Source of the DNA: Epiperipatus broadwayi
Lineage: Eukaryota > Animalia > Onychophora
Reading direction: 5' to 3'
Assembly (NCBI GenBank): GCA_028023455.1
Contig: JAQFVV010000005.1
Coordinates: 18,290,001 to 18,354,000 of the forward strand
Length of the DNA stretch: 64,000 nt
Positions 30,573 through 49,926 of this stretch are shown in pieces. The position numbers were made by a program, and so were the translations under genes. The notes beneath the pieces are model-generated. The model had not been told where the DNA came from and searched no databases. It saw only the letters and a program-made list of their open reading frames with translations. How positions within the stretch are numbered: the first letter of the stretch is position 1; each line of letters opens with the position of its first letter.

Positions 30573-32217
30573 AGCATTATAAATATCAGATTGAGCACTC
30601 AGTAGTACTACATATTTCCTCCCATATTCTTTTGCTCTATCTAATCCCTGAGCACTTAAATTCAGTTATAAGAATGGCTGTCTAAAAAGGTACAGATCGA
30701 TACCAAGTAAAGAAGTAAAAAAAAAATTAAGACAACTGTCCGGAACTGAAACATTCCACCTGTTAATTTGGTGTTAACCCCTCTACTTCACCAAGCAATT
30801 GGTTATGTTATAAATAGATGCATTAAACTTTGACTATAAGCTCTTGTTTTAAAGAATAAGAGTGTATTGTTGAATTGTAGTAGGTTCAGGCTGTTAGTCT
30901 TATTCAGTTACAAGCAACATTTGCTTACAATCTAACTACTACTTGTAGCTCCTTACTATACTCAGGGAACTAAAAACATCCTAAAGTATGGTATCCAATG
31001 ATTATTTAATAGAAAGCTTTAAGGCAAATAGAGTAAACTGTTGCTCTTAAAACCATATATTATATGTAAACAATGACAATTAAGAGATTTTTTTGATTAT
31101 TATTAATATTATTATTATTAGTTGCCATCAAGTTAACTTCTGATGACTTTACACATATTTTTCCTCCTAAATAATCTATTATTTGGTTAGTTTTATAGAA
31201 TGCTAAAATATACATTTATTATTGTGAAGGTGTAGTCTGTCCACCCCATGGCTAGGTAATCTTTTTCTTTTGCCAGTCTTTATAAACATTAAATATTTTA
31301 GTTACTTTAATTATAGTACTAAAGTATTTAATAACCTCCGTAGTTTTTTAAATTATTTCATAATTTCCACTATCTATTTACTTGAGTTAATGCCAGTGGT
31401 TCTAAATGAACTCAATGTTTTGCTTCATGGTCAAAACTCAACACTCCAAATTAACTCTATTATACTAGGAACTTCCAGGCAGAAACAGCTCTACTTACAA
31501 AAGACATTGCTGCAAACACATCATTCCCAAATTAAAAACAAAAAAGTATCCCTTGACTACAAAGTTTACAGAATTCTTTAGAGAAGCAAACTAGTTTTTC
31601 TATTTTACTGCTGCCATCTTGTATCATTCTGAGCAATTAACATATATACTCGATGGTAATGCTTATTGAATTGACATACTATGTTATTTATCTTTTTCCC
31701 AGGAGTAGTTTTTGACTCATGGACCTCATGGATTTGTTGGACTGAATCAAAATGCAAAATACCAACTGAAAAAAAGCCACAAGCTAAAAACTAGTCTGGA
31801 AAAATGGACAAGATATCAAAGAATATGAGTTTACTAAATACAATCAAGACTACAATATCCAATTAATATCTCAACTAGTGTAAGCTAATGATAAAGCATA
31901 CTTTATTGCCAAAAAATGTTGCTAAAACAGAAAATTTATTAGAGCAATAAATTACCAGTCAATAGTACTTCCTAGCAGTATAAGCTTAAAATTCAGGGAG
32001 ACTAAGTGATGAACTAATTAGTGACTGTATTTATTTTAATTTGCAATGTGATCAATTATTTTCAGGCAACACTATCTTTTTTATTATAAATATTTAATCC
32101 ATTTAAATGAATGGCTAGAAGTGATTTTCACAATAATATTGCCATAACATTTAAATGACAAAAGAAAAAAATCAAATAATACTTATTTATTTATTAATAT
32201 AATGTTTTTCTAGACAA

Positions 32218-32676
32218 TAAACATCACATGACCACCACCTCTTACGCTTGTGTATAACTTGTTAAAACAGGCAAAACTCACTGTATATTGCCACACACAG
32301 CAAACTAGAGTAATCAATGGATGTCAGAAGGCTTGTGCATAAAATCCCTATCTAGTGCCTACTCATCCAATATCCCCAGACTACTTTCTGGCTTATGGCC
32401 TTCGTCAGTGAGGAGCCTTGGATCTGAGAGCACTGCACCTAGATCTTAGGATCTAGGTGCAGTGCTCTCAGATCCAAGGCTTCTCACTGATGAAAGCCAT
32501 ATCTAGGTGCAGTACTCTCAGATCCAAGGCTCCTCACTACTGATGAAGGCCATAAGCCAGAAACTAGTCTGGGGCTATTGGATGAGTAGGCGGCACTAGA
32601 TGGGGATTCAAGCCTTCTGGCATCCATTGATTACTCTAGTTTGCTGTGTGTGGCAATATATATAGTGAGTTTTGCC
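32218..32676. mobile_element. Fold-back insertion, hammerhead-bearing family P4
   Basis: Hairpin centred on a TTAG loop (32446-32449). About 51-bp internal duplication at 32450-32553. 15-bp TSD TGTTTTTCTAGACAA at 32203 and 32677. Confidence 0.85.
32531..32575 (+). ncRNA. Minimal type I hammerhead ribozyme motif (P4), with a 3-nt insertion before the core
   Basis: TCCTCA(CTA)-CTGATGA-A-GGC CATAA GCC-A-GAAA-CTAG-T-C-TGGGG. A mirror copy at 32372-32414 (-) has CTGACGA. Confidence 0.65.
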
Positions 32677-33280
32677 TGTTTTTCTAGACAAATGACTATT
32701 AGCAAACGCTATAGAGGAATCTAAAGCAATACACTCAGGAAACAGATATGCTAATGCCATTGTTAAGTCAATTAATTCTGTAACTATGTAATTCATATTT
32801 TATAATTGATCATAACTACCATTTCTAACACAGACAAGTACACTAATCATGGATGTTTTTGAATCTGTTGTCAAACTCCAGAAATTATTTTAAAAATCCA
32901 AGTCCAATGTTTTTACTGCTTGATCTGTAAAAAGAAAATTTGTTTAGGTTTCAACTTTTTGCAGTATGTTTTTCACTGTTTGAAAGGATTTTGAGTTGTG
33001 CATCCAGAAAAGAGGTTTTGATTTGGGAATGAAGTACAGCAATCTTACTGCAGCCTACTCTAAAAATAGCATATATTAGGATGCAAAATTGATGTCTTAA
33101 ATTTGATGAACCAGAAAAAGACAGAAGCTTATGAAACTACACAAAAAGATAGTAAAAAAAGTGCAAAATAAAATCTAAATAAATAAATAATACTTCTGTA
33201 TATAATATAAAAATAATACAAAATAACAATTCGTCAATTGTTAATACAGAGTTTAATATAAATAAATAAAAACAAATAAT

Positions 33281-38050: not shown

Positions 38051-39007
38051 ATGCCCTAAATGGTTTGGTCAGTGGTATAATGTCAGACTCAAGTACAAGA
38101 TCCTCAAATCAATATCATGTTCTCTGGGCAATGGTCTATGCTTACGAACTAATAACTTTAAATAAATAATCAATCAAACAAGATTGAAATAAACAACTAT
38201 TAATAATTATATTTAAATATTTATCAAACCGGCTTTCATCTCCACTGAGATCTTCTCAAGATATTATATTATACAATTCATATAAACAAATAAGAATATT
38301 CACTCCATCTACTGGACATTATTTACATTATATTTCATTTTCTTTTTAAACATGTCCATATATTATACATAAATAAATTTAACATATTATACATCTAAAA
38401 ATTTTAACAAAATCCCCCCCCCCCAAAATAATAATAATAATAATAATAATAATAATTAAATATATATTTTACATCTTTTAAAAAAAATAAAATAAATAAA
38501 TAAATTGGTATTTACATATGTACAACCATTTCCTACACTTTCCAATTGTTTAATAAAGCCCATTTCCCACCTAATTTAGCTGGACCTTTTACTATATTTA
38601 CACATTTGTCTAAGTTTTCTTGAATATATAATGTTTCATAATATATTCTCTTATGGTAATTCTTTACATACTTAATAGCACTTATATTTTCCTCACACTT
38701 CATTTTATGCCCTGTATCCAAATAATGCAAATATAGCCCTGATCTCATGTCTTTTCTATTAATTGCTCGATCATGTTCCTTACCTCTCTCTCCCTGTCTG
38801 TCCTATATACATTTTATTGCATTTTACACAGCTAATTTTATATACCAGCCCCATCATACTACTAACATCATTTAACTCTTGCATTATGTAACCATTTACC
38901 CAGGGACTTATTATTGTTCCAAGCTATTTTTACATTACTTGGCAATTTATCTTTCATTAATCTTTTATATACTTTTTCTGAATATGGAATAGACATCCAT
39001 TTACTAC

Positions 39008-39115
39008 CTCTATACCTATTCCTGTTATCCTCATTTACTTTATCTCTATACCTATTCCTGTTATCCTCATTTACTTTATCTCTATAACTATTCCTGTTAT
39101 CCTCATTTACTTTAT
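39008..39115. repeat. 36-bp tandem x3, present only once in the other palindrome arm
   Basis: CTCTATACCTATTCCTGTTATCCTCATTTACTTTAT at 39008, 39044 and 39080. Confidence 0.9.
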
Positions 39116-39319
39116 CTACTTGGCAAAGTAGATAAAGTAAATGAGGATAACAGGAATAGATATAGAGATAGTAAATGGATGTCTATTCCATATTCAGAAA
39201 AAGTATATAAAAGATTAATGAAAGATAAATTGCCAAGTAATGTAAAAATAGCTTGGAACAATAATAAGTTCCTGAGTAAATGGTTACATAATGCAAGAGT
39301 TAAATGATGTTAGTAGTAT

Positions 39320-39642
39320 GATGGGGCTGGTATATAAAATTAGCTGTGTAAAATGTAATAAAATATATATAGGACAGACAGGGAGAGAGAGGTAAGGAAC
39401 ATGATCGAGCAATTAATAGAAAAGACATGAGATCAGGGCCATATTTGCATTATTTGGATACAGGGCATAAAATGAAGTGTGAGGAAAATATAAGTGTTAT
39501 TAAGTATGTAAAGAATTACCATAAGAGAATATATTATGAAACATTATATATTCAAGAAAACTTAGACAAATGTATAAATATAGTAAAAGGTCCAGCTAAA
39601 TTAGGTGGGAAATGGGCTTTATTAAACAATTGGAAAGTGTAG
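39320..39642 (+). pseudogene. PLE GIY-YIG endonuclease fragment (frameshifted); mirror copy on - at 38533-38860
   Basis: GLVYKISCVKCNKIYIGQTGR..., then YLHYLDTGH...YYETLYI...N (ORFs 39427-39642 and 38533-38748). Confidence 0.85.
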
Positions 39643-39899
39643 GAAATGGTTGTACATATGTAAATACCAATTTATTTATTTATTTTTATTTTTTTTAAAA
39701 GATGTAAAATATATATTTAATTATTATTATTATTATTTTGGGGGGGGGAATTTTGTTAAAATTTTTAGATGTATAATATGTTAAATTTATTTATTTATAA
39801 TATATGGACATGTTTAAAAAGAAAATGAAATATAATGTAAATAATGTCCAGTAGATGGAGTGAATATTATTATTTGTTTATGTGAATTCTATAATATAA

Positions 39900-39941
39900 T
39901 ATCTTGAGAAGGTCTCAATGGAGATGAAAGCCGGTTTGATA
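39900..39941 (+). ncRNA. Minimal hammerhead motif, U3-A8 variant; mirror copy 38222-38263 (-)
   Basis: TATC-TTGAGAA-G-(A/G)TCTC A(G/A)TG GAGAT-GAA-AGCCGGTT-T-GATA. Confidence 0.65.
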
Positions 39942-40210
39942 AATATTTAAATATAATTATTAATAGTTGTTTATTTCAATCTTGTTTGATTGATTATTTA
40001 TTTATTTCTGTTTGTGACAACATTATGGACAAATAAATCATATTGGATATTTGACCATCATAGTGACTAATAACTTTGTTTAAAAAGAAAACAATTAACA
40101 TCATACCACATTACATCATGATATTTTAATGTAAATAAAATAATGAATCATTATTTTGAATCCATATATTTTTCATAGAAAAAGCAAAAAAAAAACTTTC
40201 TATGTAAGTA

Positions 40211-40300: not shown

Positions 40301-40779
40301 AAAAAACTTTCTATGGAAGTAAATAATATGTTTAAAAATGAATTAGTTTTAAATACTAATTAATTAGTAATTAATTATTAATTAGTTTTTATAAATGAAG
40401 TGAAAACATACTGAAAAGTGAAACTTCTTTCAGCTCCTTGAATAAACAAAAAGTTATTACTTAACTTTATTAATCAAAACCAGTGCCAAATTTGTCAACT
40501 GCTAACACTGAGAATAATCGAATAATTTAATTAATGCATAATTATTCTACTAGAGGACACTTTTGCAGACTTCAGATATGAACTATACCGCTCCCTTACT
40601 TGAGGCATAATTAATGACAGAACCAAAATTTATGTTAACAAATTTATGAAATAAAACAGAGAGAGACATTAGAAAAGTTATACAAATGTTTTATTAAATA
40701 TATATGTGAATTTAAGCTATCTATGGTTCATCTCCAGTCATTTTATTCTAAAATTAACATTTCTAATTAATTATTGTGC

Positions 40780-41102
40780 AACTATCTGATGACTGACGGT
40801 TACATACATACCATTCCTATATTTAAGTAAATGAATGGGTCTAATTAGAATGAATATTAGAGTTAGATGTTAGAATTAGTTGAGGCTCATGCTCCACTGT
40901 TTATGCTAGTGGGCCGGAGTGTAGAAAAGATTTATTGCTTACCTCGAAAATGTTGTTAATTAGTTGGCAGATTTAGAGAGTGGGTGAACAGGGCAGAATC
41001 CATAAGTATTCCTTATCTTTGATCTCGCGTACGGTTGGATTCAAGGTACTTTTACCCAGGCTGTGAATCGTGTTGAGTTAACATACAATTTCGACCGGTA
41101 CA
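40780..41102 (+). mobile_element. Possible LTR remnant related to the 58430 LTR
   Basis: CpG-retaining segment ending ATTTCGACCGGTACA, the same ACCGGTACA terminus as the 58430/63633 LTR read on the minus strand. Left end not defined. Confidence 0.4.
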
Positions 41103-41354
41103 ATAGTAATAGCAACAATTCATAAAAACATTAAAATTGTAAATATATTATCTAAATAAAAAATTTTCTTTATTGTCATACTGAATTGTTTGGTATTTTC
41201 CTTTCTTTTTCTAGTTACAAATGCCGTTCATATGTGTCACTTTTATGGTTTAATGATTGTACAAAATTCAAATAATAAGTTAATGATTTATTTTAAAAGA
41301 TAGAATAACAAGTTAATGAAAAGGCTAAACTCTTCATATAGTCGCACCTCTGAG

Positions 41355-41620
41355 TGAAAGCCAGAGTAATCAATAAATGCAAGGTTTATACATAATTCTT
41401 GTCTAGTGCCTAATCATTCATTACCTTCCTAGCTTTGGTTTTTATCAGTTAAAAGCGTTATATCTGAGAGCATTGCCCCTAGAACCAATCCAATGCAACC
41501 CACCTGCAGCACTTTTTACATTATTAGCTAACTGTAAAGCTTTTAATCCAAAATGAAAACACAATAATGTTTTCAATTCAAGCTCATTAGATTTTCATGG
41601 TCATAGAGATCTGAACTCTG
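41355..41620. mobile_element. Older, diverged family P4 copy
   Basis: GCCAGAGTAATCAAT...CTAGTGCCTA...TCTGAGAGCA...ATGCAACCC...GAAAACACA...AAGCTCA is co-linear with 49500-49775. Confidence 0.6.
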
Positions 41621-42840
41621 TTCAGCAGCAATAAATTTTACTGCCTTTGGTAATTTAATAACCAATGTAACCATAATCCTGATTGAAACAGATTAGTGTT
41701 AAAATACTAAACAACACATGGTCTCCTTTTATATGATTACACAAGTTTTCCTATACTGTAAACTCTTCATACAGTAGCACAATTCATTGCAAGCTAAAAT
41801 AATGTATGGTTGCAAGAAGTTTTATACATGAAATCTCTATTTATACCTACTCATTTAATATTCCCAGACTAGTTTCTATACTAATTCAGATCTATACAAC
41901 TATGCATGCTTTTTTTTTTATTTTATAAAAAAAAACAGTATTTAGGCTTTTATAACACATCATTTTATATTGTAAGTCACAAAAGACAAATGTCGGCTGC
42001 CCACTTTTTATTTGCTATTCATAATCAATCTTCATACCTCAAAGACATCACACTCTTTGACACGTTTCGACAATATTCTGAGCCTTCTAGACATACATAT
42101 ACATAGTAGTAAAACGATTTATAAAAAAACATAGAAATCGTAAATAAAATATCTAAATGAAATGTTTTTCTTATTGTCATATTCTATTGTTTGGCATTCT
42201 TTTTTGTTTTCTAGTTAAAAAACCTATTTCTAAATTTCTTTTAACGTAATATCTCAAACTATGGAACATGTGTAAGTTCCTAACTGTGATTGCTTTTGTT
42301 GTATTCTTGATATTGTATCAAGTTCTGTGAATAAAAGTTCTTAAAATGAAAACACCATCCTATGTGTCATTTTTAGGTTTTAATGATTGTAAAAGTTAAG
42401 AATAGCAATTTGATGACTTTTGTTAAAAGTTCTAATAAAAAATTAATGATTTGAAATAATAAATTTTTAAAATAAACTTATTCAGAAAGTTAAGCTGAAC
42501 AGAATGCTCTATGAATACTATAAACAGATTTTAAGAGATAATTTAATAATTAAAGTATATAATAAGACAAAGTAAATTTAAATTACGTTATATAGAAATG
42601 TTCTTTTTCGTTCGCAAAAGTTATTTTTACTTGCGTTTATATTGTTAATAATAATAAGCAAGAATAAAAAAATAACCTGTCAACATCTAGTTACTAAAAC
42701 GTTTTTTTCGATTATATACTAAATCTTTCCGATTTTTTTTTTATATGTATTAATAATATATTGGCTACTGCTGCTTCTTTCGTTTATATTTTATTTTTCA
42801 TAATAATAATGATTATAATAATGACAAAAAAAAAAAAAAA

Positions 42841-43115
42841 AGAGTCGTGAGTACCCGTGACTAACCAAGTAATTTCAACTCAGGTCTATTCGCAGATCAT
42901 TCTTACACGATCTTCTCGACACACCATGCATTTTTCTTGTGCTACTTGCTTTCCGTCTATCACTGCAAGTTCAACCCGTTAAAACACGAGTAATATGGTG
43001 AGGCGGCAAGATTGTAAGTTGTCTGGTCAATACAGACTAGTCCTCTAACTCTGCCCAAATAACAACTCATAGCTTCCGCGTAGCTGGATTTCAGGTGCAA
43101 GCCACTACACCTAGC
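42841..43115 (-). ncRNA. SRP (7SL)-like RNA gene, about 275 nt, divergent S domain
   Basis: The 5' sequence GCTAGGTGTAGTGGCTTGCACCTGAAATCCAGCTACGCGGAAGCTATGAG aligns with the 7SL Alu domain; helices 3 and 4 pair and the GTGGC/GCTAC loop-loop complementarity is kept. Long helix-5 pairings: GAGTTGT/ACGACTC, GTCTGT/ATAGAC, CTTACA/TGTAAG, ATCTT/AAGAT, CACCAT/ATGGTG. It ends in a 16-T Pol III terminator (A-run 42826-42841 on +). Confidence 0.8.
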
Positions 43116-43720
43116 TCTTTGAAGAAGTTGAAATAATATATTTATCTTTATTTTTATAATAATAATTTTAATTGCTGAATTATAAAGATGAATTTTAATT
43201 ATGCAGAAACTTAAATAGTGACAAATGTGGTTATTAATATTTTTATAAACACTTTTTTTGTCTTCGTTTGATTTTGAATGGTTTCTAGCGCTAAATGATT
43301 AACGTGTGTTCAATACTTTTCCAAGAAATTTGTACTTTTAAGTCTATTTAAAAATTGCTTTAGAATTTGTGTAACTTTTTAATACAAAAATATATAAAAA
43401 ACACTTAAATTACAAATGAGATTTGCGGGTACTGGTAGAGGTACACATGTAGCAATAAAAGTAAATATGATATTCAATCAAAATCGCAAAAATAATGAAT
43501 GAATTTTGGTTTCATTTTTAAAAAACAATGAATTTTATTCAAGTTCCGATTTCACCGATACCGATTTTTTTATTCTTGAAATAGATTTTAATGTTATATT
43601 TTAATTCGGTAAGTCTGCTCTAAACTATTTTATCGGAAAAGAGTATCTAGGCACTGATGAATCATCATCACAGTTTACAAAAACAAAAGACGAATGGCCG
43701 CAGCACACTATTTAAAGGGT

Positions 43721-43868
43721 ATTGTGGAAATGGGATGGAGCAGAATAAGGGAAAACTTAGAGCGGGGAATGGAAAATTAAGTGGCTAACAGGCTTATCTG
43801 GGCACAATTGCTTAGATATTCTTGACTTCGTTTAAGGAGAAGCCACAATACATCACATCACATCACAT
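43721..43868 (+). mobile_element. Family L-A LINE 3' end fragment
   Basis: Matches the reverse complement of 27250-27400; ends CTTCGTTTAAGGAGAAGCCAC-(CATCA)n. Confidence 0.75.
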
Positions 43869-44617
43869 GCATCTTGAAACTTATTCAGAGATCAAACAGT
43901 TATGGATGATATAAATTATTCATTCCTGTCTGAAGTATTTGCATCTAATTAGATCTAATATTAGTTAAATAAACGTTAATGAAAATTATAGCCAGAAGCT
44001 ACTTTTTCTCCTTATTAAAAATTTATAAATAACAAAACCAACTTGTATATATAATCAAAACATCTTATAATTATTCTTCTTCTTAAAAGTGTGTGAGGTA
44101 ATAGCGCTTTATTTGTTTTTTTAAAAATAAATCTTTGCAGGCAACTGCTTGCATTACAAGTTTTGTGAACAGGTGTTTATTTTTATACTGTACTTCTTCA
44201 AAGACCTTTTCTGTAAAAATATACATTTTCGAAGAGAAAACGTTATTTTAAAAAAAAAAAACTCCTACAGAGTCACTGTGTTATAATTTATTAATATAAT
44301 ATTCATTAGGATGCATGTCAAATACATTTTTTATTTCAAACAGTAAGATTTTATTATATTTATTTAAAAAGCATACTTGATGTGTCTGTGTGAACATATA
44401 TTCGTAAAAACTACAAAACGCTTTTTAAATAAATAACCCATGGCAGGGTGAAGGTTTTTTTGAAACAGCCCTTCATAGATGAACAGTAAGGCGAAGACAG
44501 TACTCACTGGCTTGCCAATTTGCCAGGTAGGAATGATTCGAACACCTTTCCATCCTTGTTTTTCCATCTGGTTAAAGATAGCTAGATATTTATTTACTGG
44601 CTAATATTTAATGGTTA

Positions 44618-49466: not shown

Positions 49467-49926
49467 AAACAGAGCAAAACTCTCCATACAGTATTGTCAC
49501 CTGTTCTAAACAGAGTAATCAATGTATGCCAGAAGGCTTGTGCATAAAATCCCTATCTAATGCCTACTCATCCAATATCCCCAGACTAGTTTCTGGCTTG
49601 TGGCCTTCTTCAGTGAGGAGCTTTGGATCTGAGAGCACTGCATCTAGATCTTAGGATCTAATGCAACCCTCTAGCAACAACCTTTTATCTCTACTTAACT
49701 ACAAAACCATGAGAATGAAATTGAAAACACAAAAAATATTTTCAATCTAAGCTCAATAGCTTATATAGTCATATAGGCATTAGATAGGGATTTTATGCAC
49801 AAGCCTTCTGGCATACATTGATTACTCTGTTTAGCACAGGTGGCAATACTGTATGGAGAGTTTTGCTCTGTTTATCAACAATTAATGTGCTAGTATAGGA
49901 AATGTGATCATGTGATGCTTAATGGT
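49467..49926. mobile_element. Fold-back insertion, hammerhead-bearing family P4
   Basis: Inverted arms about 49467-49567 / 49772-49873 and an unpaired 3' extension 49874-49926. 13-bp TSD TATTTTCAAACTT at 49454 and 49927. Confidence 0.85.
49577..49619 (-). ncRNA. Minimal type I hammerhead ribozyme motif (best-preserved P4 copy)
   Basis: TCCTCA-CTGAAGA-A-GGC CACAA GCC-A-GAA-ACTAGT-C-TGGGGA: canonical core, GUC cleavage triplet, palindromic stem III and a 6-bp stem I. Confidence 0.75.

Follow-up and report, generated by a model that had tools for sequence, protein, structure and literature searches.

The element at positions 42842–43115 of the window (minus strand, 274 nt), the window being the whole 64-kb stretch of DNA that was analysed, is a paralogue derived from SRP RNA (7SL) and is not the SRP RNA of the organism. 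It is probably a relic of duplication, whose RNA is under little or no constraint and which is possibly still transcribed; both its transcription by Pol III and its lack of function are what we infer from the features described below. Its 5′ end on the minus strand reads GCUAGGUGUAGUGGC, and the putative Pol III transcript body has its +1 at G 43115. The element is of the A type, that is to say, it belongs to one of the two sequence types (A and B) of a small family of 7SL-headed copies in this genome.

The canonical SRP RNA gene of the genome lies elsewhere. When the 5.6-Gb assembly was searched with the Rfam model Metazoa_SRP (RF00017), the best match was C6306:1475413–1475710 (minus strand; L001:1501–1798), where a gene of 298 nt is matched end-to-end with 270.2 bits; this gene is also the positive control for the model, whose gathering score is 70 bits. 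The element reaches 34.8 bits (E = 3.8e-07), and with its head only, so that the locus is neither the only nor the best match of the genome-wide search that the earlier note had called for. In the canonical gene the loop of helix 6 is GGAG and that of helix 8 is GAAA, with the CAGG/AGCA loops beside it; TAAATATATTA stands at −29 and a T6 terminator follows. The DNA search found it to be the single intact copy in the assembly, and its sequence presumably differs from that of human 7SL. About ten truncated and CpG-decayed fragments of it are scattered over the contigs of the genome (including C4, C39, C45 and C233), and the AT content of its flanks is as high as elsewhere in the genome; therefore, the canonical gene is a resident of this genome and not a contaminant. 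As far as the SRP itself is concerned, there is nothing unusual: the SRP RNA of the animal is normal, the locus in the window being a spare, altered copy. As for the SRP proteins, a six-frame Pfam search of the 5.6-Gb genome for SRP19, SRP_SPB (the M domain of SRP54) and SRP14 remained blank; since the universal SRP54 was missed too, such a search is blind to short domains split by introns, and its blank result has no bearing on whether the SRP proteins are present.

Some of the decayed copies of the canonical gene deserve mention in their own right. The copies L003, L046, L002, L047, L006 and L048 all have heavy CpG-to-TpG/CpA decay. The copy on C6250 lacks the first 17 nt, breaks off at about nt 220 and has an A-rich run behind it, by which features it looks like a retropseudogene, and in the copy on C12812 the 5′ end is interrupted by (TA)n.

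In the element, judged by sequence comparison, the head of about 50–75 nt is clearly the sole part with demonstrable 7SL homology. It spans 43041–43115 (minus strand) and comprises the Alu 5′ domain (helices 2, 3 and 4; loops L2 and L1.2) and the start of the 5′ strand of helix 5, as delimited by the Rfam alignment, the identity with the canonical gene and the comparison with the C-type family described below. Over nt 1–48, 42/48 positions (88%) are identical to the canonical SRP RNA of the genome. The Rfam match extends over 43012–43115 (minus strand), that is, over the head and a local closing strand; model positions 1–61 and 283–299 are aligned, 221 positions between them are skipped, and no S-domain position of the model is aligned in the element. 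At gathering level, no Rfam family matches anywhere in the whole 64-kb window, and at a relaxed E-value level nothing credible beyond the Metazoa_SRP head match appears in 40400–44400. Thus the derivation from 7SL proposed in the earlier note is borne out for the head only, by its identity over nt 1–48 and its E-value, significant similarity being absent from the body.

The earlier note had also called the Alu domain intact, and this holds in part. In the window copy all 14 pairs (14/14) of helices 2, 3 and 4 are standard, and the residues of the loop–loop interaction are present: G13 and G14 in GUGGC (43101–43105), C33 and C36 in AGCUACGC (43078–43085). The U-turn, however, reads UGAAA at 43089–43093 (minus strand), where the conserved motif is UGUNR, the binding motif of SRP9/14 (PMC11581171). 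The other A-type copies have UGAAA, UGAAG or UGCAA at this position and the canonical gene has UGUAA; the third position of the U-turn (U25A in the window copy) is non-U in nearly all A-type copies. Altogether, four of the five defining features of Metazoa_SRP are wanting in the element, and only the Alu 5′ helices with their tertiary residues are found.

Inside the body, two hairpins occupy the place of the S domain. The helix-6-like hairpin ACUCGU/ACGGGU (42974–42991, minus strand) has the loop GUUUUA in place of a GNAR loop, and the helix-8-like hairpin ACUUGC/GCAAGU (42944–42970, minus strand) has a loop of 15 nt, without the GNRA sequence and the conserved internal loops. Both hairpins had been seen before and both recur in the minimum-free-energy fold; the absence of a GNAR loop from helix 6 and of a GNRA loop from helix 8 is likewise correct, these two being the candidate loops. 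As for helix 5, standard pairs suffice for drawing its five segments, as the earlier note had done, but a rival local pairing, in which nt 47–55 close with nt 93–101, is favoured both by the Rfam model and in the fold of minimum energy; covariation is significant neither for the long-range helix 5 nor for this local closure. The Rfam model pairs the head with nt 89–103 as the 3′ end, and no 3′ segment of the element is significantly similar to the 3′ end of the canonical RNA. When nt 76–274 were compared with the canonical SRP RNA by global, local and gap-tolerant alignments, the scores stayed within the range of dinucleotide shuffles; hence the S-domain remnants are not demonstrably homologous, and this applies also to the CAG...AGCA remnants formerly pointed out, whose similarity is no better than that of such shuffles. 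It may be that the body had diverged past recognition before the family expanded, or else that the founder was chimeric, a 7SL head joined to foreign sequence.

Several further candidates for similarity or structure were tried and set aside. Colinear body motifs picked out by eye (AUAU, GGAAAGCA, UCUGCGAAUAG and AGUUG..UACUU) were dropped, their homology being unproven and the alignments non-significant, and an inverted piece of S domain, suggested by a reverse-strand match of AAUAUGGU, is within chance. The folding-energy z-score is −0.88 for the element; since the genuine SRP RNA has only −1.46, the score does not discriminate and was not used as evidence.

On its 5′ side the element has a TATA-like box and an upstream element, and on its 3′ side a T-run terminator, each of them being a sequence match in DNA with 72% A+T. 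The TATA-like box TAAATATATTA (43134–43144, minus strand) lies at −29 to −19, and the canonical SRP RNA gene has the identical 11-mer at the equal distance (−29 to −19). Farther upstream, two ATTAAAATT motifs (within 43164–43199, minus strand) lie at −49 to −57 and −76 to −84. This 9-mer occurs 16 times across the 64-kb window on both strands, two of the occurrences being those upstream of the element, and in the upstream alignment a ATTAAAATT block precedes the canonical gene, the A-type and B-type copies and the C-type copies on C40, among which a G.TAAATA block near −30 can also be aligned. Given the rarity of the motif (16 in 64 kb), chance is an unlikely reason for finding it upstream of each gene type, with the caveat of the 72% A+T DNA. 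Such promoter-like features fit the view that the element descends, at the DNA level, from an SRP RNA gene that was copied with its promoter attached, and the upstream blocks common to the canonical and C-type genes suggest that promoters are being kept.

Directly 3′ of the element there is a T16 run (42826–42841, minus strand) resembling a Pol III terminator, so the long oligo-T terminator described earlier is confirmed; in other copies of the family the terminators are T4–T7, with ATAT or ACAT just before them. An internal T4, of a kind that Pol III genes normally avoid, is found at nt 132–135 (42981–42984) within the helix-6-like hairpin. The retention of CpG is real as well, the element having 11 CpG with an observed/expected ratio of 0.82 versus 0.38 for the whole window. 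However, it is not specific to the RNA: in the flanks inside the duplicated unit the ratios are 0.60 and 0.96, and therefore the retained CpG marks the duplicated unit rather than the RNA. In the window copy 9/9 consensus CpG sites are kept, the head is intact and the terminator is longer than in any other copy of the family.

A DNA search with the element led to 20 places in the genome at 71–100% identity, namely the element itself (100%) and 19 paralogues (71–96%). Compared with the window copy, A-type copies are 79–96% identical and B-type copies about 72%. With RF00017, the A-type copies elsewhere score 25–39 bits, in the head only, and the B-type copies give no match at E = 0.1. The two types alternate in arrays on C6198 (20.927–20.951 Mb) and C6681 (245–267 kb), pairs of copies stand on C6221 and C8479, and C5331 has a single copy; the window contains one solitary A unit, beside which a B-type partner was sought and none was found. 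According to the BLAST extents against C6198, C6681, C6221, C8479 and C5331, the duplicated DNA unit around the element covers 41104–43868 of the window, and the B-type monomer corresponds approximately to window positions 42371–43652. Within the unit there is no ORF of at least 70 aa, no tRNA and no further Rfam match. Every full-length A or B copy has upstream and downstream DNA in common with others over 1.3–2.7 kb. From these co-duplicated flanks it follows that the family was spread by DNA duplication of units of 1.3–2.7 kb and not by retroposition; no target-site duplication and no A-rich or LINE-like tail was found for the A and B copies.

Lesions are frequent in the family. Among them are a 7-nt deletion in helix 3 (copy C6198d) and a scrambled head (C5331); in all B copies G13 is changed to A and helices 2 and 4 are broken, features of the Alu 5′ domain are also broken in several A-type copies, and CpG-to-TpG decay runs across the copies of the family. 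Off the arrays, isolated A-type fragments were observed at L023:1501–1628 (C24:4451086–4451213), corresponding to nt 39–170, and at L030:1501–1551 (C12676), corresponding to nt 110–160. The fragment on C24 has the same 9-mer GAAGCAATG at both ends. Such isolated fragments may stem either from a retroposed piece or from a microhomology rearrangement. A high-copy 7SL SINE, the thought of which was prompted by 16,307 rough RF00017 candidates, was rejected: the head-pattern search found a near-intact 7SL head at 14 sites genome-wide.

The origin of the family may be pictured in the following way. A founder gene would have consisted of a 7SL Alu-domain head (about 50–75 nt) joined to a body that is no longer S-domain-like, and this founder, with its own upstream region, would have been copied as DNA units of 1.3–2.7 kb into the alternating A/B arrays. 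In the window copy, Pol III would start at G 43115, guided by the internal head as well as by the TATA-like box at −29 and the ATTAAAATT block upstream of it; a part of the transcripts might end at the internal T4 (about 135 nt) and the rest at T16 (about 275 nt). The head of such an RNA would fold like the Alu 5′ domain. Having neither the SRP19 site (GNAR loop) nor the SRP54 site (helix-8 motifs), it would be unable to assemble into a working SRP, and its SRP9/14 site is probably weakened, to judge from UGAAA in the place of UGUNR.

A second 7SL-headed family, the C type, exists in the same genome, with about 16 copies of about 195 nt dispersed over at least 10 contigs; its loci include L009:1483–1711 (C226:1648868–1649096) as well as L008 and L010 (C40:7.98–8.09 Mb), and it was these three that were inspected in detail. 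The A and C families have the head in common up to about nt 72 (0/300 shuffles reach the score), and their bodies are unrelated. In both, the head of about 72 nt has a G4-to-A change relative to the canonical gene, and the gene-like copies have similar upstream blocks. Unlike the A type, the C type keeps UGUAA or UGUAG in the U-turn, has a different body and is dispersed, and its copy on C226 stands between the two halves of a target-site duplication, a perfect direct repeat of 17 bp (AACATTAACTTATAAAT). Upstream DNA with a TATA-like box near −30 is common to its copies on C40. It is possible that the C type represents a low-copy 7SL-derived retroposon in an invertebrate. Since the same head is here combined with an unrelated body, the option of a chimeric founder for the A/B family gains weight.

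Structural selection on the RNA, put forward in the earlier note, finds little in its favour in the family as a whole. The mean pairwise identity of the RNA is within that of the flanks in all comparisons, being 0.88 versus 0.80–0.91 for A–A pairs, 0.68 versus 0.64–0.72 for A–B pairs and 0.83 versus 0.79–0.86 for B–B pairs, which means that there is no family-wide excess of conservation in the RNA. RNAalifold gives no consensus fold for the family (−5.3 kcal/mol, with a positive covariation term of +0.44). For the SRP-like structure drawn in the earlier note, 82.6% of the cells are paired versus 80.0% in shuffles. The two covariation measures that are robust to relatedness, namely the pair changes on both sides and the further pair types, are not significant: the former number 10 versus 7.3 ± 1.7 in shuffles (reached by 42/500), and the latter 35 versus 33 (reached by 120/500). 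Columns 7/20, 53/290, 101/256 and 136/145 are pairs changed on both sides and yet still paired. A compact competing fold has no better covariation than the SRP-like structure. To these results the many lesions of the copies must be added, and what remains on the other side is one weak trough of substitutions in a single subgroup.

In that subgroup, which consists of the window copy, C6681a, C6681b and C6221, 0.090 substitution events per site are counted in the RNA versus 0.173 in the flanks (p = 0.001), and the two-fold trough spans 42942–43241, taking in the proximal promoter and two thirds of the RNA from its 5′ end. No such trough was found in the C6198 subgroup, and a bin at 42142–42241, far from the RNA, is equally low in substitutions. 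The pattern is the one that a live Pol III gene would give; as a hint only, it keeps a functional reading alive. The signs of a live gene, namely the TATA-like box, the upstream motif and the trough in one subgroup, are all weak.

Three other explanations of the element have to be compared with a relic of duplication. A lineage-specific SRP RNA streamlined by reduction of its S domain, the first of the two options in the earlier note, is by now scarcely believable. An SRP-like rod with two apical hairpins can indeed be drawn, and 274 nt is near the length of SRP RNA; nevertheless, at C6306 there is a canonical gene of 298 nt, the sole intact one, whose helices 6 and 8 are normal, and a gene of this kind is what the earlier note had named as refuting such an explanation. 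In addition, the GNAR loop and the helix-8 motifs are absent from the element, the homology between its body and the S domain is not significant, and its 34.8 bits stand against a cut-off of 70. Far more would speak for a functional Alu-domain ncRNA, although this too is rather unlikely. The A-type genes, at least those of the window/C6681/C6221 subgroup, would then be expressed by Pol III and the body would have a lineage-specific function, and by an analogy of the same rather slender probability the head might be used, for example, for binding SRP9/14 or the ribosome in the manner of scAlu, BC200 and B1-derived RNAs. Such an RNA would account for the trough of substitutions that one subgroup has in the promoter and the 5′ part of the RNA, for the helices 2–4 and loop–loop residues kept in the head, and for the TATA-like box, upstream motif and terminator; the window copy with all its consensus CpG sites and some compensatory pairs point the same way. 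It would have to coexist, however, with a UGUNR U-turn altered in nearly all A-type copies, an internal T4, many visibly broken copies and non-significant robust covariation measures, and the RNA is over-conserved neither family-wide nor in the C6198 subgroup, with an equally deep trough lying in non-RNA DNA of the duplicated unit.

Alternatively, the element could be the source gene, or the fossil of the source gene, of a 7SL-headed SINE-like retroposon, in which the head would serve as an internal promoter for Pol III and the body would be a foreign module. This explanation is improbable, and clearly more so than a functional ncRNA. It draws on the A and C families having a head of about 72 nt in common with unrelated bodies, on a layout that is the same as that of the C-type family, one copy of which has the perfect 17-bp direct repeat, on the promoter-like upstream blocks common to the C40 C-type and the A/B copies, and on the two isolated A-type fragments on other contigs (L023 and L030). 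Against it, the full-length A/B copies all have common flanks, which indicates DNA duplication; an A-rich or LINE-like tail is absent, near-intact heads are found at only 14 sites in the genome, and a target-site duplication was found for no A or B copy. The relic of duplication is the preferred explanation; what counts against it, besides the trough in one subgroup, the well-kept window copy, the few pairs changed on both sides and the common upstream blocks, is that concerted evolution in arrays is able to mask selection.

The relation of the element to known systems can be summarized as follows. It resembles metazoan SRP RNA (RF00017) in its head, with 88% identity over 48 nt, helices 2–4, G13/G14 and C33/C36, as well as in the TATA-like box at equal upstream distance and the T-run terminator; it differs in its 34.8 bits versus 70, in UGAAA, in being without the GNAR loop and helix-8 motifs, in its dissimilar body, in its internal T4 and in belonging to a multi-copy and partly broken family. 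Reports of repeated 7SL-derived families are confined to supraprimates, hagfish and one shrew mole, and the 7SL-derived SINE monomers comprise FLAM/Alu, pB1/B1, Tu, hagfish Ebu1-1 and shrew-mole Urop; all known 7SL SINEs arose from a central deletion of about 183 nt, with both 7SL ends retained (PMC13023118, a 2026 paper). Like these SINEs, the element has kept the 7SL 5′ head with the internal Pol III promoter region and has lost the S domain, and the Rfam model closes its head after about 104 nt, as in a centre-deleted 7SL. The SINEs have features of their own, namely A-rich or LINE-derived tails, target-site duplications, dispersal and thousands to a million copies, while the A/B family, unlike them, has about 20 copies in tandem DNA units of 1.3–2.7 kb and 170 nt of extra, unrelated body.

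The layout of the A/B family comes closest to that of tandem small-RNA gene arrays with variant members, such as 5S rDNA and the U1/U2 snRNA clusters. As in those arrays, each unit contains one gene of small-RNA type together with its upstream region, and two diverged monomers alternate in a repeat of about 4–5 kb (estimated from coordinates). The difference is that the A/B copies differ from each other by 10–30%, so that there is little homogenisation, and that the gene is no better conserved than the spacer.

In this invertebrate genome, two small families thus combine the 7SL head of about 72 nt with bodies that differ between them, and both would be new occurrences of such derivatives outside vertebrates. 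One family was multiplied, promoter included, by tandem duplication of DNA, and the other has at least one copy with a target-site duplication. If they are transcribed, the families would represent an early, low-copy stage of the recruitment of a 7SL head, and if not, they would be 7SL pseudogene arrays; in either case they are of moderate interest for the evolution of Pol III genes and SINEs. It can be speculated, though it seems doubtful, that the 7SL head was recruited independently of the vertebrates into new Pol III families, namely the tandem A/B family, whose window copy would be active as an Alu-head RNA, and the retroposing C-type family. Should this be true, it would be the first 7SL-derived mobile or ncRNA lineage outside vertebrates, and one built from a head and a foreign body, unlike the central-deletion type.

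Some repeats in the neighbourhood of the element may also be recorded. The window contains, at 38159–40004, a near-perfect palindrome of 1.85 kb with a 94% match to its own reverse complement; about 1.1 kb separate it from position 41104, where the duplicated unit has its low-coordinate edge. In the 3′ part of the unit, 41362–41608 is a repeat copy that is 68% identical to 49511–49776, and the same repeat is found at 32215–32682 and 49467–49924, with an inverted pair at 32264–32682.
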